Shown here in pieces: positions 13,115-64,000 of a stretch of DNA of 64,000 nt. The notes under the pieces were generated by a model. That model was not told the DNA's origin. It ran no database searches and was given only the letters and a program-made list of their open reading frames with translations. This DNA is from Utricularia gibba (lineage: Eukaryota > Plantae > Magnoliophyta). Where the stretch lies: contig NEEC01000009.1 in the NCBI GenBank assembly GCA_002189035.1, positions 496,001 to 560,000 on the forward strand, in the 5' to 3' direction. The position numbers were made by a program, and so were the translations under genes. The stretch's first letter is position 1. The number at the start of each line of letters is the position of its first letter.

Positions 13115-13751
13115 TTAAACCTGACCCAAAAAAACGGGTTCGGATCGGACTATTCTACCCTTGGAACTGGAACCAGCGGGGTTGCAGTTATCCCTGATCG
13201 CCGTCAACTCGTACGGGGGTGCGTCGGATGCAAGCCACTGTTCGACGGCGAGCATCTGCTGCGCGCATTGCCGATGGGCGCCGGAGGACGTGACCTCGAC
13301 GTAGTTGCAGTACCATCCGTGGCCGGAGCCAGATCCGTCGGAGGTGAGATTCATCGCGCAGGCAGGGCACAAAAGGCAAGGCCCACGGCCGCTGAAAATG
13401 TCGAGGTTCCCTCTCTCGAAATAGTCGTGGCCGTAGCCCATTAACCCGCCCCACGATTCCAGATCGCCGATCACGAACCCGGATCCTGCGACGTCGTACA
13501 GCGTCAGGGAGATCGTCGAATCGGTGCCGCCTTTGATGATCGATCCCGTTCTCACGTACACGGTGTACACGCAATCCGATTCCGCCTGCAAAATCCGCCA
13601 TTTCCACGATTCAACGACGCAAACTGATAATCAAAACCAGCTTTTTGTAGGTATACGCATGTAACGTCAACTTTGGAAGAAGACGAAAACTCACAGATAC
13701 GGAGAAGAAGATACAGACACAGACAAAGAGGAAGAGCTTTTCGGTTTCCAT
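13115..13751 (-). CDS. PLAT/LH2-domain protein (plant stress PLAT family)
   Basis: Signal-peptide exon 13751-13695 (METEKLFLFVCVCIFFSVS), GT-AG intron 13694-13586, then exon 13585-13115 with CVYTVYVRTGSIIKGGTDS...YFERGNLDIFSGRGPCL...GWYCNYVEVT. Confidence 0.93.
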
Positions 13752-13999
13752 CTCTCAAGCTAACGCCGGATCGCACAACTTTCGAATCAAGGGGAAACTG
13801 ATTCACTGCGAGTATTTATAGTAAAACAAAGATGGTGGAGGTTCAGACAAGCTAGAATTGCGGGACGTGGATCTGAAAGGGTATGATCCTGATAGTGTAT
13901 GGAGTGCTTAGGATTCTTCAGACGAGTTTTGATGGAAGAAATTGATTGAGGATAAACAGGAGATATGGGATTTTAACTTTGGAATATATGAGATCTGAT

Positions 14000-14385
14000 T
14001 GTAAGGTATGAGAGAGTTTCTGCAGAACTGCACATACAAGAATACTGGGAACTCATATTTATAGGCTTCATATTCGACCGTTGCCGAAGTTACCGTTGTG
14101 TTTGTCAGTTGCTTCATCAACGGGAGGAGACGCTCCTCTTCTCATCACTGCTGTCTTCATCTTGTCGTAGTGCCACTTCGTTGTTGGGCTGAGCCTTCAA
14201 TGGGCCTCCATGAATGCTGGCCTAATGCTTGCAGGGCATGTACAGGTAGGAACCCATCACTAGAAATCCAGTTTGATTTCTATCCCCATTCATCTTCACG
14301 GGAGACTTCTCGTACTCTCGTGCCTTCTTCCCCAACTCTGCAATTCCGTATCCAGCTTCCTCATTTTGAGTTGTGGCAGGATCAA
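14000..14385 (-). repeat. Partial LTR lacking the first ~21 bp; about 2% diverged from the other two copies
   Basis: Reverse complement of 14726-15111 with about 8 substitutions counted by eye. The outer end is TG on the + strand (CA in LTR sense). The TATA box cctataaata is retained. Confidence 0.9.
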
Positions 14386-14704
14386 CAACTATGTGATGAC
14401 CTGAAGATCAACATCATCAAACCCATAGTGCTGAAAATAGACAATAAATCGGCAATCAGCATTGCTCAAAACCCGATGATGTTCGGACGGACAAAACACG
14501 TAAAAATCAAGTATCATGTACTCAGGGATTATGTTAAAGAAGGATCGATCAAGTTAGATTACTTACCTTCGGAGGAACAGGCTGCAGACATTCTTACGAA
14601 ATGTCTATTTCCAAGAAATTTCAACAGGATCCGCAGCATGCTAGGGCTGAGACCGAATCCGCTGGAGATTAAGCCAGAATCCAAATTCCTTCTTCAAGGA
14701 GGAA

Positions 14705-15111
14705 TGTTAGTGTGTGAAGAAGGAATTGATCCTGCCACAACTCAAAATGAGGAAGCTGGATACGGAATTGCAGAGTTGGGGAAGAAGGCACGAGAGTACG
14801 AGAAGTCTCCCGTGAAGATGAATGGGGATAGAAATCAAACTGGATTTCTAGTGATGGGTTCCTACCTGTACAAGCCCTGCAAGCATGAGGCCAGCATTCA
14901 TGGAGGCCCATCGAAGGCTCAGCCCAACAACGAAGTGGCACTACGACAAGATGAAGATAGCAGTGATGAGAAGAGGAGCGTCTCCTCCCGTTGATGAAGC
15001 AACTGACAAACACAACGGTAACTTCGGCAACGGTCGAATATGAAGCCTATAAATATGAGTTCTCAGTATTCTTGTATGTGCAGTTCTTCATAAACTCTCC
15101 CATACCTTACA
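14705..15111 (+). repeat. Complete 407 bp LTR (TGTTAG...CCTTACA) preceded by the polypurine tract AAGGAGGAA (14696-14704)
   Basis: TG...CA termini, PPT directly upstream, RNase H end upstream of the PPT, and TATA-like cctataaata near 15046-15055. Confidence 0.93.
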
Positions 15112-17004
15112 ACCAGAATTTGGATTCTGGCTTAATCTCCAGCGGATTCGGTCTCAGCGCTAGCATGCTGCGGATCCTGTTGAAATTTCTTGGAAATAGA
15201 CATTTCGTAAGAATGTCTGCAGCCTGTTCCTCCGAAGGTACGTAATCTAGCTTGATCGATCCTTCTTTAACATAATCCCTGAGTACATGATACTTGATTT
15301 TTACGTGTTTTGTCCGTCCGAACATCACCGGGTTTTGAGCAATGCTGATCGCCGATTTATTGTCTATTTTCAGCACTATGGGTTTGATGATGTTGATCTT
15401 CAGGTCATCACATAGTTTTATAATCCACTGAGTATGGTTCGCAGCATAAGCTCCAGCAATGTATTCTGCCTCGGTTGAGGACTGGGCGACCGAGTCTTGT
15501 TTCTTGCTGTTCCAAGAAAATACAGCAGAACCTAGATGAAACAGATATCCTGTGGTGGAGCGACAATCATTATCATCTCCAGCGAAGTCTGAGTCCACAA
15601 AACCCTGCAGGTTAGCTTCTGTCCCCTTTTTAAAATATAACCCAAAATTGATCGTAGCCTTCAGATAGCGAATGATTCTCTTGGCAATCTCCATGTGTAC
15701 CTTGTGAGGTTTGTGCATATACCTTAGAGGAAAGACACAGCGAACGTGATATCAGGGCGCGTGGCCATAAGGTACATTAGGGCCCCTATGATCCTTTGAA
15801 AGTCATGAGGATCACATCACTGGTTATCCATTTGCTTCATCTTGTGTTTCAGTTTTGGGGGAAACGGTATGGAGCTGTCTTTGGCATGCTGTTGCCCAAA
15901 TCTGAGTATAATATCTTCCATGTATTTCTTTTGATTCAGAAATATGTATTCATCCCCTTGTTGAATTTCCATTCCCAGAAAATAGCATACCATCCCGAGA
16001 TCTGCCAATTCAAATCTGCTTTTCAGTAGCTCCTTCTGTTCTTCAATCTGGTCAGCATTGCTTCCAGTAATGAGTATGTCGTCAACATACAGGGTTATAA
16101 TCACTTTGCCTTTGGAATTCTCCAGGATGTACAACGTGGTGTCATTCTTGCTTCTCATGTAGCCGGATTCTATGAAGTAAGTGTCTATAGTCCCATACCA
16201 CTCCTTGGGTGTCTGTTTTAAGCCGTAAAAGGCCTTTTTCAGTTTCAGTACTTTGTCTTTGCCTGCTTTGATCTCAAATTCGGGCGGCGGATGTACATAG
16301 ACATCCTCGTGGAGTTCCCCATTGAGGAAGGCACATTTTATGTCCAAGTGATACAACTTCCAGCGGAAACTTGCTGCCATTGCTACTACCAATTTTATGG
16401 TGTCGAGGCGAGCGACAGGGGCGAAGGTCTCAACATAGTCTATCCCTGCCCTTTGAAGGTACCCGAGAGCCACCAATCTTGATTTCAGTTTGTTGATAGT
16501 GTAGTCTGGATTCAGTTTCGGTTTTCGAATCCATTTGAGACCAAGAACTCTGGTATTTGCGGGTTTATCGACGACTTCCCATACATCATGCTTTTCAATG
16601 GAGGTCAGTTCCTCATACATCGATTTCTTCCACTCTGGATCTTTTAAGGCTTCTTGATTACTAATAGGCTCATAGATCAAAAGGCACTTGTCGAGAATGT
16701 CTTTGATATATCTATATTTGGGGTGAAGAGGTCGGTCACTGTTATCATGATAATCTTCATTGTTTTCAGGGTCTGTTTCAGAGAAGTGAAGAACATATCG
16801 TGCATAGAGTTCCTTTTCTTTGTCTGTCTCATTGTCATGTGATTCAGAGGCTGATATTTCTTGTAATAATCTAGGGGCGAAACAGGGGTTCCTAGCTGGA
16901 TGAACAATATTTGCTGAATCATCACTGGATTCAGTACCAACTGAGTCTCTGGAGAGGTCCTGCATGTATTCTTCTTGAAGGGTAAGATTAGGGTTGCTTT
17001 CACT
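15112..17004 (-). pseudogene. Copia pol fragment (RT + RNase H) with frameshifts
   Basis: ORF 15817-16965 has KSRLVALGY, DYVETFAPVAR, LDIKCAFLNG, LYGLKQ-like FYGLKQ and LYVDDILI. ORF 15107-15718 has GFVDSDFAGD, SSTEAEY, IDNKSAI and RTKHVKIKYH. Frameshifts occur near 15840 and 15725. Confidence 0.92.
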
Positions 17005-17735
17005 AGATGAAGCAAATGGATAACCAGTGGTGTGATCCTCATGACTTTCAAAGGATCATAGAGGCCCTAATGTACCTTACGGCCACGCGCCCTGATATCA
17101 CGTTCACTGTGTCTTTCCTCTAAGGTATATGCACAAACCTCACAAGGTACACATGGAGATTGCCAAGAGAATCATTCGCTATCTGAAGGCTACGATCAAT
17201 TTTGGGTTATATTTTAAAAAGGGGACAGAAGCTAACCTGCAGGGTTTTGTGGACTCAGACTTCGCTGGAGATGATAATGATTGTCGCTCCACCACAGGAT
17301 ATCTGTTTCATCTAGGTTCTGCTGTATTTTCTTGGAACAGCAAGAAACAAGACTCGGTCGCCCAGTCCTCAACCGAGGCAGAATACATTGCTGGAGCTTA
17401 TGCTGCGAACCATACTCAGTGGATTATAAAACTATGTGATGACCTGAAGATCAACATCATCAAACCCATAGTGCTGAAAATAGACAATAAATCGGCGATC
17501 AGCATTGCTCAAAACCCGGTGATGTTCGGACGGACAAAACACGTAAAAATCAAGTATCATGTACTCAGGGATTATGTTAAAGAAGGATCGATCAAGCTAG
17601 ATTACGTACCTTCGGAGGAACAGGCTGCAGACATTCTTACGAAATGTCTATTTCCAAGAAATTTCAACAGGATCCGCAGCATGCTAGCGCTGAGACCGAA
17701 TCCGTTGGAGATTAAGCCAGAATCCAAATTCTGGT
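17005..17735 (+). repeat. Inverted duplicate of the RT end/RNase H segment 15112-15842
   Basis: ORF 17129-17740 translates identically to 15107-15718. About 5 transitions were found by eye over 731 bp, and both copies share the CTC-TAA frameshift. Confidence 0.93.
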
Positions 17736-18142
17736 TGTAAGGTATGGGAGAGTTTATGAAGAACTGCACATACAAGAATACTGAGAACTCATATTTATAG
17801 GTTTCATATTCGACCGTTGCCGAAGTTACCGTTGTGTTTGTCAGTTGCTTCATCAACGGGAGGAGACGCTCCTCTTCTCATCACTGCTATCTTCATCTTG
17901 TCGTAGTGCCACTTCGTTGTTGGGCTGAGCCTTCGATGGGCCTCCATGAATGCTGGCCTCATGCTTGCAGGGCTTGTACAGGTAGGAACCCATCACTAGA
18001 AATCCAGTTTGATTTCTATCCCCATTCATCTTCACGGGAGACTTCTCGTACTCTCGTGCCTTCTTCCCCAACTCTGCAATTCCGTATCCAGCTTCCTCAT
18101 TTTGAGTTGTGGCAGGATCAATTCCTTCTTCACACACTAACA
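17736..18142 (-). repeat. Complete 407 bp LTR, inverted relative to 14705-15111
   Basis: Reverse complement of 14705-15111 with one difference seen (ggcttc vs ggtttc). Confidence 0.93.
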
Positions 18143-18379
18143 AGTTTGTGTGGAAAAGGGGTTTATTCTATGTAAGAGTTTTCAAAATCTTTAAAAACAG
18201 TGAAGAATTCATCAGAGGCAGGATGTATTTAAGCAGATTTGGCGAGATGGAAGATTTTTCCAGGTGCCAAAGACCACAAAAACTACTGCTGTTCTTTGAA
18301 AGTTGGGGATGTGCTGCAAATGCGTCCTTGTATGAATTTGAGCTCTCGTTGTCGGAGGCATTGGTGGGGGTGCTTAAGC

Positions 18380-20716
18380 CTAGAAGTCACAAAAACTATG
18401 TCTTTGAGGCACGCAATCTCGAAATTCCATGTTGGCTCCTACACAGGAGAAACCCTTCTCGTATCTTGGATCTTTCCGGCTGCTTGTCTGCACCTCCACA
18501 GCAAAGACGGCGCAGACAGGCCGGTGATCGGAAAATCTTGACTCGCCACGAATATAAGAAAGCTGCTCGATTCCGGAGCCACGCCATAGTATTCTATCAC
18601 ACCTGATAAAAGAAAGAAAATGGCACAGTGCTTCAGGCCAATGAAGCAGGAGATCCAAATTCCAGCATGATTTTACGCACAGATGAATTGGGTGGAAACT
18701 TGCCATGCCGGAGTCCTTCGTTTCTTCTTCGACTTGGTGGTTACTCCGGCGTATGAGTCGGAGTTTTGCGAGTACTTGTAAGTCGGAGGAAACATGATCT
18801 TCCCTTCTTTCCATCCAAGAAACACTCTTCCGCTCTCCCGTTCCCGTCTCAGCTGTTAATTTTATGCACGATCTTTTAAACGGCTTTAAATCTGATGAAA
18901 TTCAATAGTTAAACGTATAAACCAACCTGATCTTTCTCCAAGAGGGTGATCCAATCCTTATCCTCCAACAGGCGGTTTGCTTCTTGATAGTTCGCACAGG
19001 TTCTGTAGTTCAAGTCCCCGAACCAAATCGCACGGCTGAAAGGGATTTCATCATGATCTGTAGGGGTTACTTTTGGACAAAAGCTAAAAGGAATACTCAA
19101 AGCATGCATACTCATGGTCAATGATTCTCTCCGGTACTCTTCTGCTTGATCCTTTGCAAACCCGGACAAAAGTAGTGCTTTTTAGGATTTCCGCCACATC
19201 GGAGTTTCTCTTCAGCTCGTCCCCTTCCTTCTCGCCCGAGGCCAGGTGACTGCAGACGAAGCACAGGCTGGTCTTGTGCAGTGTCATGCTAATCGAAATG
19301 CATCCCTGCAGATTCATCCACGTATGTCATTACATATTTGGTAGTATAAAGTATATCTTCTGACAATGTAAGAAAAGAGTGAGGCAAACAACCTTATTGC
19401 CAAGGTATCCCATGATTCCTCTGCCAATGCAAGAAATTCTGAGGTGACTGATGTGCTTAACCAGCTCTCTCCGTGCCCAGATTGAAAGAAAGATGCCCAC
19501 CATTTGCTTGCTAGCAACAAGCTGATAATGTGGCCTCGACGGGACAGATATTCCGGCCGTCGAAAGGAGATCGTCGATGCTTGGAATAGGATTTCCATCC
19601 AAGGGATCCCTCATCTTCTTGACTCTAGGATTTGAGCATCCTCTGGGACAATTGCACCCTTTAAGACCATGATCATCCACCCTTATGTTCTTGAGAATGT
19701 CTTTGAGTGACGACGGTTTTTTGAACATTTTAGTCGAATTCGAGCTACTGTTCGAATCATGGTACGCCTTGTTTATAGCTTGACTTATCAAGAACAACCA
19801 TTTGGCTGCTGGCTCATTGTCCTCCATCACCAGAACATTCCCTGCGTTCAAGGGAACTATCTCCTGAAACCTGAGATAAAATATCAGATTTTTTTGCTTA
19901 AAAAACACGTTCTTCTGCAAGAGGAAGCATATCAGATTCTTACCCGAGTACATATAAGTCTGCTGAACCTTCCACCTGCAAGAAATCTTCAAGGTTGAGT
20001 CCGAGATTAGGCACGTTCCCTCCAACATTCCACGTCCCAACAAAAACCCTAAAATTTTACCGACAAAAATTGCCTTTTATACTACAGTTAAAAGAATCTT
20101 GAGAGAATCGAAGTCAGCTTTTTTACACAGTACCTGATGTCTTGTAGTACGGTTTCTGGATCCATTGATTCATCAAATGGTGAAAGATCCAGGCTCACGA
20201 TCTCCCCACTGCTATGCCTTTCTGAGAAAACAAACCATTCACAAAAAAAGGCTATCTGGTAAGATCTAAAGCTGCAACAGATCATGAATAAATACCTCTA
20301 GAGGAAGAGGAGGCTGATTCTTCAAGAAAGGCTCTTCTTCTGTATGCCCATTCTGCCCATGACCGCGTGGATGAATAGGGAAATGGAGAAAAGAAGCATC
20401 TGGTTTTTTATCAATTCTAAAGCCGTTACCATCCGATTGAAGGCTGTCTTCTTGTGAGTCTTCCCTGCCGCATTTTTTGGAACTGAAAATCTTCGGGATG
20501 ATGAACTTTTTTTGTTGTCAACAGAAACCAACGAAATCCGGGTCAAAATGAATTGGTAAAACAATAAATGCAACAGTGTTGGGTGACTACAAGTACCATC
20601 TTTTTCCGTTCAACTTTTGGGGGTGACGGTGGTGGGCTACCGCCGGAGCCGTCGTCTCCGCCGATGATGTTCGTCATGTTATCGTCATCGGCGGGCATGT
20701 CATCAATGAATGACAT
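18380..20716 (-). CDS. IP5P5: Type I inositol polyphosphate 5-phosphatase 5 (BST1/MRH3/DER4-like)
   Basis: Multi-exon gene with [75 protein letters not shown] and SDHRPV. It ends PQRHSFCDF, like the Arabidopsis At5g65090 product (recalled). Start ATG is inferred at 20716. Confidence 0.9.
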
Positions 20717-27592: not shown

Positions 27593-30500
27593 TTACTTGT
27601 TAGACCACTGGATTTCAATTTCGAGGTTCCTTGAAGGCCCGCTTTTGCTTTCAGGCAGCAGAGTGTACTCCCGGCCACTGCTCCGACCATCACCACACGA
27701 TCGATCTGGATTGTCACCTTCCCGAACGAGCTCTGCAGCGTTCAATCCACCAATGGGAGAAGTGAGTATGCAGCAAAATGGGAACAAAGTGGAAGCATGT
27801 CTGGTTTAGCGTATAGGGTGGGTACCTTTCCCATTTTGCTCTTGTTCTTGCACGAAATGTGAAGCTTCTGGCCTTTGGGCGGGCTTTCGAAGGACCAGGC
27901 GAAGCTCTCATCCCACTCTGGGTTCGGACCAGTTGATACAACCTGCAAGAGTCAGAGACATGTTCAGCAAGCTACTGGTGGTGGATCATAATCTCGGTAT
28001 TTTATTGCAACACATATTCTAGAAAGAACATCAGAACAATGCAACTCATCAACCTTGGTTTGTCTGGGGGGAGTGTTTCCGAGTGTAAGCTTGCAGTAAA
28101 CACTGGGATTTCCAACAGATTGTCTCATGTTGTTTCCTCGCTTGATTATCACGACTAGAGTGCCTGGTAGGCATTGCAGCAAGAACTCAGCTTTCTCCTG
28201 GAAGCGTGGAGGTGCGGATTGTATCAAGTACTGTAAGAGTGGAATAGCATCAGCAGCTGCGATGGATTGGGCCCGAGAAACTTCAGCAGCACAAGCCGTC
28301 CATGCTTGTCTCAGGAGGAACAGAGCATCCAATGCAGCTTCTTGAGTTGCCTCCGAACCCGTCTTGAGAGAAGTCACTAGATGAGGAATGCTTAGAGTTG
28401 CAGGTTCAGAGGCTCTGAGGCGGGGGAAGTTGCCAAATAGTGCATTCAGAGCCTTCAGATACTCTTCATTCACAGTTCCAGTAGCCCATAAATCTTTCTC
28501 GATCGCAGCTGCAAGAGGATGAGATTCAACAGTGCATTTAGAGTCAATGATTTCATACATAATCATCCATTTCTACGAGTATGAAAAATCCTTGAAGGAA
28601 AATAGAAGCATGAGTGCGGAGTTACCTGTGATTGCCCTCACGGTTTCGCTTGAAGCATATTCTTGAATGGTATTATTCGAGAAAAGAAGTTTGATGAACA
28701 TTGCTGCCTGTATTGATGTCTCAGGGTCACTGGAACCAATCAAATCCAGCACAACCTGCACCCCACCTCCTTCTGCAACTGCTCTTTTATTTGATCGACT
28801 GTACATCACAAGGTTCTGGAGAGCACATATAGCAACTACCTTCATTTCTTCAGTAGGTTGATCCTCGAGCAAATTTACAAGTGCCCGGCATGCTGAAACA
28901 GCATCTGCAGTTCGAGCAAGAGCCTCGTTTTGGAATAAGTCACCAAGTGCAAGGGTCGCTAGCAGCCTTGCTTGCTGGCCTTGTGTTTGAGGATCCAGAA
29001 GGTACTGGGAGAGTGGCAAGATAGCAGATTTTGTAGCTTTTGATTCCCGGATCTTTACATTGTTCAGTAGTACCTCAAGCAATCTCGCAGCTGTTTCCTC
29101 GCACTGATGATTCCTGAGAAGGTCAAGGAGAGCCTCAATAGCGCCACTTTCAGCCATTGCTTGCGCACTCGTAGAGTCATCACTTTCCAAAACGAGCAGT
29201 GCATTGAGTGCACCAACAATTGTACTCTCTGATCCTGATCTGAGCAACCTAACCAGCACTGCTACAGGCACTTCCAAATAAAATTCAGAACTGAACTTCA
29301 GAATGCTAGATAAAACGGAAGCAGCCGGCTCCCACAAGGCATGAGGGATTAGGGGATCAGCTTGAAGTATAACTTTGGACAATTCACTCACGCCGCCTTC
29401 TTTGGCAATGTCATTTGGCCAAGTCACTGCTAAACATACAAGAGCTCTCACGGCCCTCTGCTGCAAAACACTGATTCCAGTGCTAAGTATACGCACAAGT
29501 GGGCCAATTGCCTGCTGTGCAAGTGGATCTCTCTGAAGATGCTCCTCCAACAGAAGGTGGGATAGAAGCTCAGCAGCCAACTGCTGGACTGCTGGCGACG
29601 GGGAATCAAGCAGAGGGAGGAGGGGTTCCAATGCTTGCTGAGGTGTGGGAGTGTAATCTGCACGACATTGTGGATGCTCTAAAATATTCACAAGTACTTG
29701 CAATGAGCTGTGCTGTCCATCTGGACCATACTCAGATCTTGTCAGCAAATGGAGGAGCGGCTCAACAACTTTTGCTGCGGATGGTCCTTTAGCAATGGAT
29801 GCATTGTTAGTGAGAATTCTAAGTAACTCCGCGAATGCAGCACACAAGAAATCTGGGGCCTCTTCAAGAATGTCAAGGACACACTCTATAACGCCAGCTT
29901 TCACCATTTCAATCTTGCATACAGGCCTATCTCTACCTAACTTAACCAGAGCCCTTGATACAGCTTCATGGAGCAAATAACTTCGACCAAACAGAAGGCC
30001 TACTAGAGGGATCACAGCACTATGAGCAGCAACAAGCTCAGCCAGCTGTTCATCATCTAAAAGTTTATCCAGTGCACGAACAACAGAGAGTTGAGCCGGA
30101 CTATTCTCAATGAGTAAGAGAGAAACCAAGGGCTCGACACACCTAGCAGCTGCTACAGTAGATCTTATTCTCGTGTTGCCAAAAAGCACACAGCACAACT
30201 CAGCTGCATCACCCTTCAGCTCCAATGAATAATTTGAAGAAAGAATCCTGCATAGCACATCAATAGCATTCATCTCAATATCAACCACTACAAGAGCCTT
30301 TGATGGGTTTTCATTAAGCAGTCTAATCAGAGCAGCGATGGCTGCATGTTGCTCTTTCTCCAGACCAGTATTTAGAATTTCAACCAGAGGCTGAACGGCT
30401 TGCCTTGCAGATTCAGCATTCCTCACATGATCGGCAGAAAACAAATTTTCCAAGGCCTTTGCAGCACTGTACCTTGCTGCTCTTCCACCTAATCGAAGAA

Positions 30501-33500
30501 CAGCTATAAGTTGACTGACAGCACCAAATGCTGCATCATGTCTCCTGATCTCAGCTGTGCTAAACAGTATGCCCAGTAAATCAGTAGCAGCTTCTTCATA
30601 GGCATCTTGAGGGCCAAGAGATAGGTACTTCGTTAGACCTTCCAACGCCCCGGATTCCACCATAGCAACTTGATTTGAAGGGCAATCTGCAGCTATCTGT
30701 ATTAGTAGTCCCAAAGCAAGAAATGGGGCTCCAGGGCGATCAGGAATAGGTTTAAGCAGATCAACCAAAGCTGGTATAGCTTTCCTGGAGGTAGCACCAA
30801 GCCTGATGTCATCAACCCGAAACATTCGTTCAAGAGCAACTTGATCAGGGTAACGAATCAAACCAAATTCATCAGCTAACTCTAGAAGGTCTTGTATGTC
30901 TTCATCAGCACACCCAAGCAATGAAATGAGTCCCACTGCAGCTCCTGAATTCGCAACAGATAGAAGAGTACCCCTGCTACCATTACAGATAAGACTTGCC
31001 ACAGCTTGAGCAGCAAAATATCTATTTGCACTGTCATCTGATTTCAGCAAACTAGTCAATACAGGAATGGTTTTGATGGCGGAATTCGATCTTATAATAT
31101 CTCGACTCTGAAATAAAACTGCTAGCAATAAAGCACATATCCACACGCTCCTGTCTTCTTTATAATCAGCCTGAAGAGAGATTTTTAGAGAAGAACCAAT
31201 GTGATCAGACATACTACAATGTGCTAGTAAATTAGGTTTTAAAAAGAAATGGCATGCTAAAGCTTAGCACTGAAGAAACCAAATAAGCAAAAAATTACCA
31301 GGGAATACTGCATCAATGATAGAGAAACTTTTTCAGTGAGAACTTCGATTCCCCCAGCCTCCATGATCTCAACCTTACTTCTGTCGTCATGACATGCTAA
31401 GGAAGAGAGGAGCCACACAATGATGTCGGCTCCACGAATGACAGATGTGCATCTTTCCATGCTTCCTTGTTTTGCATCCTCCTCACTCAATCTGCATAAG
31501 CTTACAGCATCCCTCCAGCCATTGTCCCAACTTCCAAGGGTTCAGTAATGGGTAAAATCCCAACAAGAGAATGTAGGAGCGATGCACACAAATTGGACTG
31601 ATTTAAATCTTCAACCACCCTGTGGCGATTAACGTTGGCGGTGCAGACAAGAAGTGCCGCCCCACCAATTTTGATTGACAAATCAGAGGATAAAATTATC
31701 CTTCTTGCAATAGAAGAGATGCAGTCAGTGGAACATGATATTGTTTCACCAAGAATTTTGGGCTGAGCCTGGGAGAGCCTAGATAGGATTTCTATAGCCT
31801 TATCCTGCAAGGGAGGTGAGGCATCAGGAATACATGAAACTATTGGGGTAATACTGCTGGGATATTCAGCGAGAGCGGTCCAAGCAGGTTTCACATTCCC
31901 AATATTTCCACTTGGTCTCGAGAGAACAGCAAGAGCATCTAATGCCTCAGATGCAGAGATTGACACGCTATCAGCAGTTTCCAAGAAAGAAACGGTGGCA
32001 AGCACAGTACCTGTATGGTTTACACAGTCAATTATATCAGAATCAATTTTACGAGAACGCAGGAGCCTAGCAATTGCTGCTGATGCATGTATCTGTCCAT
32101 CCATTGATCCTTCTCGCAATACTCTTGTGGCAGGTAAGAGAATTTTTTCTACTGTAGCCTTTTCAGAAGCTTCACTGTCTAAAAGGAGATTGGCCAAGGC
32201 ACAGATTGCCTGCTCTGCCACCTTCAGGATTCCAGAGTTGGCTAGAAGTACCAACAATGGAAGAGCTTCCAGACAAAGAACTGCCACATCACGATTCTCT
32301 TTAACAGATAGAAAGATAGCAGCAAGGCACCGAGATGCTTCAACTAAAATGTTCTCAGTTTCAACATTCAAGAGGTTGATGATAGCCTCAAAAGTGTTGA
32401 CAGCTATGAAAGTTTCCCGCAAGTCCTTCCTCAAATGAAAAATACCAGCGAGAGCAAGGGCAGACTTCGCTTGAGTCTCTTCATTATTAGAGCTTAAAAT
32501 TTTAATCATTGTTTCAATAGCATCATTTTCAGCACTTCCTTCTCGTAGTAAATCGTGCAGAGGCGCCACACAAAGCAGGCTTTTCAGGGCATCCAATACA
32601 TACACTTTGGACTCAGGCAAATCACTGATCAATAATGCAGTGAGCTGGCTGATAGTAGCCGTATCTGATTTGTGAATCAGATGATTTAATGTCTTCGCAG
32701 CAATTTGCTTCCCATTCACACTTCCATTCTTCAGCAGCCAGAGTAATGCTGGAACCGCATCTGCACTTTCAACACATGCACGTATATCCTCACTGTGATT
32801 ACAGAGGTTTCCAAGGATCGTTGCAGAATCTTCTTTAGCTTTCGCTGAGCCAGTTTCAAGAATTTGAACAAGAGGGGGAATACCACCCGCAGCAGTTATT
32901 GCCCATTTGCTATCATCGTTTTCAAGGGACAGAAGACAAAGTAGTGCAACAGCATTCTCTTGCTGTTGTTCAGATGACAGGCCAAGAAGGGATATTAGAA
33001 GTTGTATCCCCTCACGACCTTGAAGGGCTTGCCACAGGGTACCTTCATCATTGCAGAGAAAGAGGAGTGGTCTTAGTAACTCTTCCTGAACATCATTCGG
33101 TGCCATTGTAATCAAACCAACAAGAAGTCTCTTTGCATCAGAATATGCCAGTTTGCTTGCTAGTATATCATTTCCGTACAAACTAGCAAGAGCTTCAATT
33201 GTCCTCTCCTGGACCAAAAAGGTTAATTGGGGCTTGAACTGCTGGATAAGTGTTTTTTCCACTTCAAGAGGATCAGATGCTCGAGCAGATTCTGCCTTGC
33301 TATCATATATCATTAAAGCAGATGCTAGTGCCCCTAATGTGTCGGCAATTTGAGCAGGAGACGTGCAAGATCCAAGACTTTTACCAAGACTAGATATGAC
33401 ATAAGACAAGCCTCCTGATATGTTTGCAAGTGCACACATTGCATTCTCTTGCAAAGCTTGGGCAAATTCACCCTGCATGAATTCTTTTGAAGGAGCTATT

Positions 33501-34637
33501 GTAGCGTTTATCAGAATCGGAATACCATTACTGCTAGTAATCTCACGCTTGGCTTCTTTGCACTGTGCTGAAAGAGACTTAAGAGCAGCTGCAGCCTCTG
33601 CTCTGACAGAGGCTTCATTTCCAGGACCAATAAGCTTAAGGAGCACTTTAGTAGCCTCAGCAGACAAAATACTGGAACAAACAGATGGGTCCTCCATAAT
33701 CATGCAAGCCAGTAGAAAACATACATTTTCTTGAGTACTTGCTTGGCCTATCATCAGCAATTTGATTAGTATATCAACCCCCCAGCGTGGACAGTTGCAG
33801 GCCAAAAACCCTCGGTGCTGCTACAAAGATTCCTCAATGTTCCTGTCAGCAGGTCATCAATCACGTTACCAGACTTAAGCCCCTTCTCCAGCTGTTTCCA
33901 TAGTACGGGGACAACACCTTCTGTTGAGAAGATTTTGGATCCAACGTGATCCTTAGTTCCACCCTGGGATACAGCATGTATGGTCTTCGCAGCCGCCATC
34001 TGACCTTCAGTTGAGCTAGACTTGAGAAGACCAAGAAGAGGAGGGATGCAACCACCAAGTAAAACTTTAACTCGCAATTCATTTTCTTGGCACAAGGAGC
34101 CCAAAACACTGGCAGCCTGCATCTTGATCCCAAGTGATCCAGACCGAAGAAGTGATACAAGAACAGGAACTGCTTGAGAATGTGATCCTACAGCACCAAA
34201 GGCATTTTCCCGGGTAACAATTAGGTCATGTAGCTGCCTCAATGAACTTTCTTTTTCTTGTGTTGAAGTAGAACCCTGGCGAAGTTGCTCGACACATTGT
34301 GCAACACTTGCCAACGTGCCATCTGGATCCTCCATGCTAGCCCTATCTCTGCATGTGAAGAGCCATTAAAACAAGGGTTAGGGGATTTTCTCCTCGTAAA
34401 CCAAAGTTAGTGTGTTCACCTTTTACATCAGAGAGGCATACAATGCGATCAAAATAGAAGTCAACATGTGATACAGCATGGAATTAAATGTGCTTAGTTG
34501 CGTCCATAATATTATAAAATAAAAGTACACAAAACAAATTTCAAAGTCGGGAATGTGCAAACCTTGAAGAATGCTTTACTGTGATATGGGGGGTTGGAGG
34601 TTCTGGTTCACGAGATTTAGCCTCCCCATTTCTCTCC
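27593..34637 (-). CDS. CSI1: CELLULOSE SYNTHASE INTERACTIVE 1 (ARM repeats + C-terminal C2 domain); three apparent 1-nt deletions; first coding exon not located
   Basis: Exons approx. 34637-34563, 34348-31299, 31170-28626, 28508-28054, 27942-27826, 27732-27593. Near-continuous similarity to CSI1/POM2 from [14 protein letters not shown] to [11 protein letters not shown]. Frameshifts at 33778-33783, 31526-31528 and 27670-27672. Confidence 0.95.
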
Positions 34638-59880: not shown

Positions 59881-61419
59881 TCCCATTTTTTTGTTAATTA
59901 TTTAAAGAAAATAATAATAATAAATAAATAAGTACCTATTGGTAGGTGACAGTTATGAGTAGGTTAATTTGCAATGTAGCTCACTACAAAAATTATATGG
60001 GCTATATAATCTTAATTGATAAATATTTGTGAAGTGGTACTATTTAGTGTAGCTATTTACTAAATAGTTTTACTTTTAATATAATATATTTAGTATAATA
60101 AAAATAATTAATTTTTATTTAAAAATTGTAATATATAACTAAATATATATGATATATGATATTTTTTTTTAATTTTATATAATCTATATTTTATTTTATA
60201 TTCTTATTTATACCAAAATTATAATTAATGATGTATGTAAAATAATTTATGCGTGTGGCTTATCATTCGTATAAATGTATATTATTCTATGAACATGATT
60301 TATAGAATTACCAACATCTGCATATAAATCATTTTACGTGTGTAGCTTATCATACGTAATGATGATATAAGATTGGAGGTGAGAATATCTCATACGCACG
60401 TTGTTTATGCTATCACTAAAAAATTTTCCGATTTTTTCAATTATTGTCATTTAAATTTATATTTGTTTTGTCATTTCATAATATATAAATACGTTAAAGA
60501 TTTTTTCGATGTTTTGGAAATTTCATTCAATTCCCAATATTCGAGTAACATATATTTAACAATGAAAATATCAATTTGTCCTACAATGAGGGTGAAAGTT
60601 TATATATTCTTTTATCGTCTTGCATCAATATGTCGGATGTAAACTATAAAATTATTGATTTTATTGGATATTTTAGTAACTATTATTTTTTTATATTTAT
60701 AATAATTAATTGCATTCTAAATGTATCACTAAGTTTTCAATTTTCATTTTTTAAACTATGATGACAATCCTAGTGTGAACGTTACTACAAAATATTACTT
60801 AAAATGTAAATTTAGTGATATTAAGTGTAAATATATGAAATTGTTGTTATTGACTTTTTTTTGAAAATATGGTTGATTTCGATGATGATAGTGGAGACAT
60901 CTCATATAGTACAATTTCTTAAATCTTATTCTCGATAGTTCTTTGGGATGTTCCATAAGACAGAAATACCATGTTTCCAAAATAATTCGATAACACTTTC
61001 ATGTCCAAGAAAACAATTTGTAATTTTTAAGAAAAACACTAATGAATTTTGGTTGTTGGCAATTACGAATCTTGCAAACCGCAATGTTTTAGAAAAAATG
61101 AAAGTTAGATCTTCTTTTTTTGTGCCACACTGACATAGTTTATGAAATAAGCGAGATTTATATGGTTTTTATTTTTATTATTTAGAATTATATGTTATAT
61201 TAAATAAATGATTAGTTACATCTATATTATTTATACATATATTTGTTATTCTTATATATTTTCATAAATAATGAATTAATTATATCTATATTATTTATAT
61301 ATATTCATTACATTTATTTGGATGTGTTAAATATTCAAACACATTCCTCAAATATCTCAATTCTGAATATATATTCTCTCTATCTCTTTACAATGTTAAA
61401 TTCTATTTCATTTGTGAAC

Positions 61420-64000
61420 ATGCGAGTATTCTATGGTGGTAACATAGTACAATTGGTTTATAGTCATAGAGTATTATTAGGATGTGCTAGAATGTCTTTG
61501 ATTAAAAAGGTTTATGAACTCCAAGACACTTACATGATGCATATATGAAATAATCGATATATATCTGACACATTTTCCAAGTAGTGATGTTCGTTTAATA
61601 ATAAAAAGGTTCTATATAGACATCTTATTATATAGCTCTCTCAGATAATGAGTACTACGATTTCTATTTCAATCCAATAATACTTAGTGTGGTGTTAGAC
61701 ATTTTTTGTGATATGTGAGCTAATATCGAATTTTCAAGTATCCACATTCAATAATATTGGATTGTATATGATGATGTTGATTTTTTTATGGGCATGAACA
61801 CTCATATAATGACTCAATAATATTGGATAGCATATGATGATTCTGATTTTTTATGGGCATGGACACTCATATGATGATTCTGATTGTCATAGACAATGCT
61901 ACTGACTTCTATGACACATGTAAGCAGTCGTCAGTATCTACGAACACTATTTCCACCAAAATCTGATAACGATGCTTTACTATCGTTGGATAGTGAACCG
62001 ATATCGGAAATACTTTGAAGCAATGACAACACAATACCCTTAATTGATCATGAAAATGAATAATACAAGAAATATAGTTCAAATAAGTAGAGTTTATTAT
62101 TGTGCTAAGACTCTATGAACTATTCGAAGTTTGTTGTGATATACAACATAGTGATGAATGAATCCATTTACATGTCGGGCTCACAAAAGATTAAAAAAAG
62201 TAATATATGATTGGTGGCCAAATGTTGACTAACGTGGTTGATGGTTCCCCTCTATTTATAGAGGAGAACATTTTCTACAAATGAATATCGAAACATCAGC
62301 ATTTGATTAGTCTTTTAGAGTGAGTTTGTTAGAAATTCAGTTTCGAAGGGTAGAAAAGGAAAAAAAAGGAAAACAATTTTTTTTCCTATTCGTATTTCTC
62401 ACCTCATAGAGTTTTCGGAAAGAAAGTGGAAAGAGAGAATAAAACCCATTAGTTTATCAAATCCCTTTGTATTCATTGTGGTAAATAGTGAATTTTTCTC
62501 AGAGTTGGTTGTGGATGTAGCACTTATTTTAAGGTAAACCATATTAACTTTTGGTGTTTATTTTCTTGATTTTATAATTAAATTTATTGTATGGTATCGA
62601 TTGCATACAAACCATAGGTACTATGAACCTACGTCGTGGACTTACACTTGTACCGAAAGCCAAAGTTGTTGCAATTGCCAATTACTCGGTGTTTGTTGCC
62701 ATACGAGAATTTGCTATAAAATGCAATAGCAACTCCAAGTATGAGCTAATTTGTCATAAATTATTTTAAAGTAAATCGCACTATTATTAGAAAATGTATT
62801 ATAGCCATAGTAATATGAAAAGTATATGGAAGATCACATAGCTAATATAACATCAAACTTGCAATATATTTTGTATTTTCACAACAAGACGTGTGAATTT
62901 GAGAAAATACTTTTTGACCCATAGCCTGATTGAATGGTAAGAGATTGGTTGTGAATTAGATTGACTACGATATAGCGATTCATCTAAATGCAATTCCAAT
63001 TTAAGATATTGTACTCAAAGGCATAGTGTATTCTGATACGAGCATAGGAGCTAGTTTATGGTACATAGGAGCAATCTATCATTGAATTGCCTGAATATCT
63101 CTTAAAGTGCAATGATTAAATGTAGATACTATTGGTACATTTAAAAATACTCGTGGAAGACAAGAGGAACATCTATTGCATTGCGTTTTCTGGGCCTTTT
63201 GACCGTACGCTGCAAGTTACAAGCATTATCGTCCGATGATATAGGTAGACGAGACACACTTATATGTTAAATATAACTATAAATTATTTGTTATTGTGGT
63301 CATAGATGCCGAAGTTCATTGTTTCCCTGTGTTATGAAAATGGTTCCTACACCTATTAAATGTGCATGTTGTCCACAATTGCCATCCAATATACGTAATT
63401 AATAATGAGAGAGTCAGATTGGTAGATACTTTAAAAACGGTCTTGACATTTCGACTATCTAATGGGATTTATCATTTCTACCTATGACATGTGGGGTCGA
63501 ACTGTATTATATATAATAGAAACAAAAATCTACGTATCTTAGCATAGGTCGCCGGATCTACACCACATGTTGAAGAATTCAATCGTATGATGGAGAGAAT
63601 ATATCACATACATTCAGTAGGATAGCAGTATTTAATAGACATTCCATTGGAAATATAGACATTATCGCATGATTGAGGTGCAAGATTCACTTGTTTTATT
63701 TTTTGCAAACTACATGCTCTATTAATTTTCAACTCTACTTCCATGTATGACTTCCGCTTCTTAATTTCCAAATTCGATATTATAACTACAAACCACGCCA
63801 AAACGATAAATGGAATTTTTCGAGGAGAGCATCGTTTGTTGTGTATATCTATTGTGTATATCTACACCTCAATTTTTTTGAGATAACTTCTTTAACTACT
63901 CTTTTGATAAATGTAGTCATCATTCAATAAAACAAATGAATACTTTGCATACAGGATGGCCGCAGCTCATCAAATAACTCAATAACAAATTAAGTTTGCA
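61420..64000 (+). mobile_element. Old, heavily decayed Mutator-like transposase region
   Basis: 63170-63330 translates to LHCVFWAF...KHYRPMI*VDETHLYVKYNYKLFVIVVID, the same MULE DDE motif as at ~47190-47310. The surrounding DNA is AT-rich with broken frames; ends are not defined. Confidence 0.55.
62327..62610 (+). mobile_element. Possible solo-LTR-like fragment nested in the decayed MULE
   Basis: Begins tgttagaaattc and contains gtggatgtag...aaccatattaac..gtgtt, a motif style common in copia LTR U5 regions. The 3' end is not defined. Confidence 0.3.

Follow-up and report, generated by a model that had tools for sequence, protein, structure and literature searches.

A rearranged copia insertion in Utricularia gibba with a scrambled interior that could trigger its own silencing, not a proven family killer

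What first triggers the silencing of retrotransposons with long terminal repeats (LTRs) in plants is an open question, and hairpins made from rearranged or nested copies are a favoured but undemonstrated trigger (PMC11624286). In maize, part of MuDR is naturally duplicated in inverted orientation at the locus Mu killer (Muk; Slotkin et al. 2005; PMC3440606, PMC2725412), for which transcription, small RNAs and heritable silencing of active MuDR elements have been proven (PMC3440606, PMC2725412). Here we describe a Ty1/copia insertion in the bladderwort Utricularia gibba that shares features with Muk and with two kinds of rearranged copia element. It lies in a window of 64,000 nt (assembly GCA_002189035.1, contig NEEC01000009.1, positions 496,001–560,000 of the forward strand; all coordinates below are positions in this window). 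With a probability of roughly 60%, we read the locus as a rearranged, dead copia insertion whose interior has been scrambled and which could trigger silencing of itself, and not as a proven killer of its family. Long near-perfect inverted repeats with a spacer are also typical of the IR71-type hairpin RNA (hpRNA) loci of Arabidopsis, for which Dicer-like processing is expected without an RNA-dependent RNA polymerase; those loci are defined by measured small RNAs, whereas the present one is defined by its sequence only.

Like Muk, the locus is a partial inverted duplication that includes a promoter-bearing terminal repeat and part of the main open reading frame (ORF): its two arms are 1142 nt long and hold LTR positions 1–413 and the 3' end of pol. 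At either locus a kilobase-scale hairpin could form and a gene beside it is placed for read-through, and both are single segregating loci. They differ in that Muk derives from a DNA transposon, whereas our locus is a dead copia element known from sequence alone, with predicted LTR promoters of its own that converge and with no detectable target family. The Arabidopsis element EVD (ATCOPIA93) offers a second likeness: it is also Ty1/copia, it has opposite LTR copies 1–2.5 kb apart inside one element, and hairpin or convergent transcription giving LTR small interfering RNAs (siRNAs) has been proposed for it, as it could be for our locus (PMC11624286). The EVD case, however, is a fresh insertion in an Arabidopsis laboratory line, from an active multicopy family and with a proposed siRNA output (PMC11624286), whereas the U. 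gibba locus is natural, older and heavily deleted, its family is otherwise absent, and nesting is one of three possible origins. The third comparison is with template-switch complexes (Sabot and Schulman 2007, PMC1950507), which share with our locus a copia origin, three LTRs, duplicated internal sequence and a single 5-bp target-site duplication (TSD) around the three-LTR unit. The published complexes are arranged as direct tandems, their LTRs being complete and the outer ones near-identical (PMC1950507); in our unit the middle LTR lies in inverted orientation, truncation affects all three, the outer two are ∼2.5% apart, and it is the middle and right LTRs that are near-identical.

The boundaries of the insertion were determined from an allele that lacks it. 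We compared the window, at an identity threshold of 95%, with assembled short-read contigs (which show presence, not level, and from which rare variants are dropped) of four runs: X1, X3 and X5, which are three samples from two studies, and X6, which carries the same species label and comes from another study. A 7715-nt contig of X6 joins position 13924 to 18143, skipping 4218 nt, and five letters at the joint fit both sides; this is an exact empty site. The inserted unit is the 4213 bp at 13930–18142; it has TG...CA ends and lies inside a 5-bp TSD, AGTTT (13925–13929 on the left and 18143–18147 on the right, each seen in the flanks and in the empty site). The stretch 13930–18142 is a single, minus-oriented Ty1/copia insertion that some plants of the species carry and another lacks. 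The Ty1/copia assignment agrees with the TSD length, with the TG...CA ends and with an RVT_2-type reverse transcriptase (RT) followed by RNase H.

The core of the unit is a long inverted repeat, which had been proposed in a first-pass annotation of the window made by a model from the letters and ORFs. We searched the window for repeats and then compared the arms base by base. The arms (14705–15846 and 17001–18142) are real, 99% complementary and 1154 nt apart, and extend over 1142 nt each rather than the 1138 nt first given. They align without indels and differ by six transitions and, at the inner edge, by one further mismatch. Within its 1138-nt arms the earlier count by eye (about six, all transitions) is exact. 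Sites that tell the arms apart are 15817/17030, 15785/17062, 15767/17080, 15741/17106, 15142/17705 and 15045/17802. The spacer (15847–17000, minus strand; assigned from RVT_2 and contig depth) is contiguous with the left arm on the minus strand, and an ORF of 382 a.a. (15817–16965, minus strand) encodes a Ty1/copia RT (Pfam RVT_2, E 1.3e-71), as expected from the copia origin and RT spacer that had been suggested. The RNase H region and a C-terminal ADILTK motif align with copia relatives. Both arms have the same frame break in the RNase H region (∼15722–15728 and ∼17119–17125), so that the shared inactivating frameshift of a dead copy is also upheld, and the left arm alone has an in-frame stop at 15817–15819. 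The first description of the arms needs correction. Each arm was said to hold a full LTR plus the RT end/RNase H, but only LTR positions 1–413 of 477 are there, and the LTR is inverted relative to the adjoining pol piece (RNase H region to pol end; 15116–15846, antisense on the plus strand, in the left arm and 17001–17731, plus strand, in the right arm). This is not a natural 3' end: the arms fuse LTR 1–413, inverted, to the 3' end of pol, an unnatural arrangement.

Beyond the inverted repeat, the unit contains a third LTR copy and a further 302-nt copy of the pol end, at 13930–14704, which the first-pass annotation did not include. In the repeat search, 13994–14385 is inverted to 14726–15117 (392 nt) and 14387–14688 is inverted to 15116–15417 (302 nt); both of these outer repeats are direct repeats of parts of the right arm. 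In total the unit has three LTR copies (A, B and C), and the last 302 nt of pol are likewise present three times. LTR A (13930–14385, minus strand, positions 22–477) is the 3' LTR and ends in ...CA at the TSD; LTR B (14705–15117, plus strand, positions 1–413) is the outer part of the left arm; LTR C (17730–18142, minus strand, positions 1–413) is the 5' LTR and starts at the TSD. The additional pol-end fragment, E2 (14387–14688, plus strand), runs naturally into LTR B through the bases preceding the polypurine tract (PPT) and the tract itself (14689–14704, plus strand, with AAGGAGGAA at 14696–14704). The LTR length of 477 nt, of which the arms keep only 1–413, follows from the empty site, which extends copy A by 64 nt to 13930. 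These 64 nt (13930–13993) have no significant similarity to the remaining element, and the best reading is that they form the LTR's U5 end; the similarity between the two ends of the LTR is weak, being reached by 43 out of 1000 shuffles.

The sense of the LTRs, plus in B and minus in C (18142–17730) and A (14385–13930), is fixed by the PPT and pol stop, by relatives and by the empty site. On the plus strand 14693–14710 reads TTC AAG GAG GAA TGT TAG (F-K-E-E-C-stop), with a nine-purine tract directly before TGTTAG, and many pol proteins among the relatives of the RT end in AKEEC, IKEEC, TKEEC or IKGEC. In a relative from Gossypium anomalum (L003) two LTRs 4522 bp apart start with TGTTAG directly after AAGGAGGAG, and the pol stop is inside the LTR start. 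Moreover, 29–31 nt of 14677–14708 are matched, with one mismatch, by one contig of X1 (586 nt, its remaining sequence unlike the window) and one of X6 (31 nt, at about twice single-copy depth, in a run without the insertion); the PPT/LTR junction is therefore conserved and canonical, and a distant relative with a conserved PPT region is therefore present elsewhere in the genome. We also considered an LTR parallel to the adjoining pol, with diverging promoters; this is ruled out by the empty site, the PPT/KEEC-stop, the Gossypium relative and the number of junctions needed (three versus five). The TATA box, TATAAATA, is at LTR position 344 of 477, which is typical for a long U3. It is kept in LTR A (14063–14056, minus strand); in LTR B (15048–15055) it points rightward into the arm and in LTR C (17799–17792) leftward into the arm.

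Read on the minus strand, the unit consists of LTR 1–413 (C), 730 nt of antisense pol running from its end to the RNase H region, 1884 nt in sense orientation with RT, RNase H and the pol end, antisense LTR 413–1 (B) with the PPT and the 302 nt of pol end, and LTR 22–477 (A). Three novel junctions, with 0–2 nt of microhomology each, account for the whole structure: J1 joins LTR position 413 to the reversed pol end and occurs twice (15116–15117 and 17730–17731, with a 2-nt overlap, GA), J2 joins the spacer to the right-arm pol (17000/17001), and J3 (14385–14387) joins LTR A position 22 to the pol-end piece across one unmatched base (14386, from the sequence around 14380–14395). A 13-nt perfect inverted repeat (14684–14696 and 14715–14727, plus strand) brackets the PPT and LTR start. 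The J1 breakpoint is 5 nt into its left half and the J3 breakpoint is where its right half ends (LTR position 22/23), which suggests that secondary structure guided the strand switches; the repeat itself may be a natural stem of this copia lineage. The junctions leave no room for gag, protease or integrase, and a search of the element for a primer-binding site (PBS) gave chance-level matches only. With PBS, gag, protease and integrase gone and pol broken, the element is immobile; it is a copia derivative through deletion, not an intact member.

Inverted duplications are a known artefact of long reads, and misassembly was among the refuting outcomes named with the first-pass annotation. We consider a palindromic long-read chimera vanishingly improbable. 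X5 record 16 (15787–17060) spans the two arm/spacer junctions, reaching 60 nt past each without a single difference, and X3 records 9 and 10 and X1 record 6 agree with it there, X3 record 10 bridging J2. The junction between LTRs A and B is bridged by X5 record 15 (14619–14888), and the right end of the insertion by X1 record 8 and X3 record 14. Short-read contigs of X1, X3 and X5 together bridge J1, J2, the A/B junction and the right end, so internal junctions are bridged in three samples from two studies; the arms, moreover, differ by real substitutions with no indels. No isomer with the spacer flipped was found among the contigs (weak evidence, as contigs drop rare variants).

The three copies differ unevenly. 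In the three-copy part, B and C agree against A at 14 out of 694 sites (2.0%), including six transversions: LTR A differs from B/C at nine of 392 sites (10 of 392, ∼2.5%, for A versus C) and E2 differs from both pol-end copies of the arms at five of 302 sites. B and C differ at two sites of this part, both C-to-T in C, and at 6/1138 sites (0.53%) over the arms, significantly fewer than the 2.0% for A (p 0.004). As a methylation signature the transitions between the arms were rejected: the older differences have a spectrum of 8:6, and compared with this the excess is not significant (p 0.11). The inner 105 nt (17001–17106 and 15741–15846) contain four of the six differences between the arms (p ∼0.001), giving a divergence of 3.8% for the inner part versus 0.19% for the outer 1033 nt. 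This clustering suggests either that the arms are older and gene conversion has homogenised their outer 1 kb, or that synthesis near J2 was unusually error-prone; of the recent duplication of a dead copy claimed initially, the dead copy stands and 'recent' becomes uncertain. The flanks of the carrier and empty alleles differ at one of 383 sites, and the 2.0% between A and B/C is larger (p 0.026), a weak hint, from one SNP, that A-type and B/C-type sequences differed before the insertion.

In-situ rearrangement, strand switching during reverse transcription and nested insertion all fit these data, and the three are not separable here. In the most likely history, J1 and J3 would have come from an inversion with inverted duplications at the 3' end; homologous repair, one-sided and between the inverted LTRs, would then have copied the B arm onto the 5' LTR, making J2 and deleting the 5' half of the element; and gene conversion since then would have kept the outer 1 kb of the arms near-identical.

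It is possible, though unlikely, that the unit arose in one round of reverse transcription with strand switching, by fold-back or self-priming, or by end-to-end jumps between two co-packaged RNAs ∼2% diverged, and that the cDNA was integrated as is. This would agree with the one TSD and the natural outer ends, and the J1 breaks are at reverse-transcription landmarks: one falls 5 nt inside the stem that lies just upstream of the PPT, and the other, at LTR 413, is ∼22 nt past ATAAAC and 62 nt past the TATA box, about where the end of R is expected. The plus strand from 14387 to 17000 reads as the 3' end of an RNA followed by its own antisense copy, a pre-insertion divergence of A from B/C fits two templates, and template-switch complexes inside one TSD are known for copia (PMC1950507). 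But the outer LTRs are unlike (A versus C, ∼2.5%), in contrast to the published complexes, and the 302-nt pol-end piece entering LTR B is of the diverged type, yet B matches C. Fold-back arms would also have been integrated as identical copies, yet four sites of the inner 105 nt differ, and the R and poly(A) positions used in this argument are inferred only.

More doubtful still is an antisense nested insertion, in which a ∼2% diverged sibling would have entered a first copy within its 3' LTR and, after two microhomology deletions, the arm would have been copied onto the 5' LTR. Illegitimate recombination commonly causes deletions in the LTR elements of plants, and nesting explains why E2 and LTR A differ from the arm sequences by ∼2%. 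An antisense self-nested EVD insertion has been seen and proposed as a source of LTR hairpins (PMC11624286). However, five events are required and no inner TSD is left, both donors are absent from the genome (contigs, at least 95% identity), and LTR C would need near-total overwriting by B.

Whatever the history, the first-pass annotation expected any transcript crossing the region to fold into long double-stranded RNA, and a model transcript does so. For a minus-strand RNA from a start in LTR C at ∼17760 to an end in LTR A at ∼13990 (3771 nt), the predicted folding energy (dG) is −2590 kcal/mol, with two uninterrupted helices: one of 756 pairs (17759–17001 with 15846–15088) and one of 357 pairs (15087–14727 with 14384–14024). 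The claim of facing LTR promoters holds too, once the PPT/LTR-start junction fixes the orientation: the promoters of LTRs B and C would converge on the spacer. The B promoter would yield a mirror-image RNA, and RNA entering by read-through from a neighbouring inositol polyphosphate 5-phosphatase-like gene would share its strand with the LTR C transcript. The 756- and 357-bp helices would be an ideal Dicer substrate, and the outcome would be siRNAs and methylation aimed at the locus itself, perhaps also at neighbouring genes. A self-targeting siRNA locus that is kept methylated would be the most likely state.

Silencing of the copia family in trans, with Muk as the model, was also suggested in the first-pass annotation, and we find no visible target for it. 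The spacer has a contig depth of 7.0 versus 7.5 for the flanks in X1 and 4.4 versus 5.3 in X3, with LTR pieces at about twice that, and the element is single-copy in the sequenced samples of the species. The run without the insertion, X6, has no other sequence of the element at 95% identity or more apart from one 31-mer. Homologous active elements, which Muk silences, are absent at ≥95% identity from X1, X3, X5 and X6, with copies of 80–95% identity not searched for. Among proteins of similar length the next best to the RT is 46–51% identical, the RT itself being found on one 1274-nt contig only; an exhaustive search of 1.84 billion cluster representatives returned its own representative and nothing above 50% identity, and a metagenome scan with the RT gave one distant match (27% identity, L001). 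The 203-a.a. RNase H ORF and one pentatricopeptide-repeat (PPR) ORF of the window are not on record in an exact-protein look-up. The parallel with Muk therefore survives for the structure, an inverted duplication with a terminal repeat, and not for the target family, none being detectable; since near-identical relatives are missing, silencing across the family is not expected.

We thus think it improbable that this is a true Mu killer-like locus, whose hairpin siRNAs act in trans and heritably to silence active members of its own copia family. Long near-perfect repeats over the LTR promoter region and pol, convergent predicted promoters and a flanking gene able to read through would suit such a role; the insertion is polymorphic, so a genetic test is possible, and the near-extinction of the family would fit a past success. 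Against it are the missing target (a single-copy element by depth, with none at 95% identity or above in the contigs of the four runs), the distance of the nearest RT protein (at most ∼50% identical) and the runs labelled RNA, none of which contains the stretch (0.00 of its words). A more elaborate scenario seems equally improbable: a double-hairpin unit would have been made in one aberrant round of reverse transcription, with switches at the PPT stem and the end of R, and integrated as a 'suicide' element; its hpRNA against LTR and pol, from the convergent promoters, would have let a segregating allele help to extinguish its own copia family.

Several points weigh against the interpretation that we prefer, a scrambled dead insertion that could silence itself. 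Seven runs guessed to be RNA contain next to no words of the stretch, which is weak evidence against abundant long transcripts. LTR promoter activity is a prediction, and the transcription start and poly(A) positions of the LTRs are placed from motifs only. Any siRNAs could still reach, in places, copies in the unsearched range of 80–95% identity. Finally, the 2.0% between A and B/C, set against one difference in 383 in the flanks, fits two source copies better than a purely in-situ history, and the order and nature of the rearrangement events are beyond proof from one allele.

The insertion lies close to two genes. The 5-phosphatase-like gene (minus strand) ends at 18380, with its stop codon ∼235 bp from the insertion, which would place the insertion in or just past the 3' untranslated region of that gene. 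On the other side, the ORF of a PLAT/ATS3-domain gene (13115–13591), on the same strand as LTR A, starts ∼340 bp from the insertion. LTR A points out toward this gene and could act as an alternative promoter, or could be a source of methylation spreading into the PLAT promoter. In the empty allele the two genes are ∼575 bp apart; the genome is therefore compact here. With a presence/absence allele, two long perfect stems, predicted convergent LTR promoters and genes within 250–350 bp on each side, the locus is a natural test case: plants with and without it can be compared for siRNAs, for spreading of methylation and for expression of the neighbouring genes. It suits the study of cis effects and hairpin processing, and probably not that of family-wide silencing, its value being limited because no active relative is detectable.

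Elsewhere in the window there are two intact single-exon genes for PPR-E-DYW editing factors (6188–7966 and 37667–40054) and two adjacent armadillo-repeat ORFs within 28573–33805. Two segments are outliers in base composition, with a GC content of 0.51 at 10001–12000 and 0.24 at 60001–62000, against ∼0.40–0.45 elsewhere.

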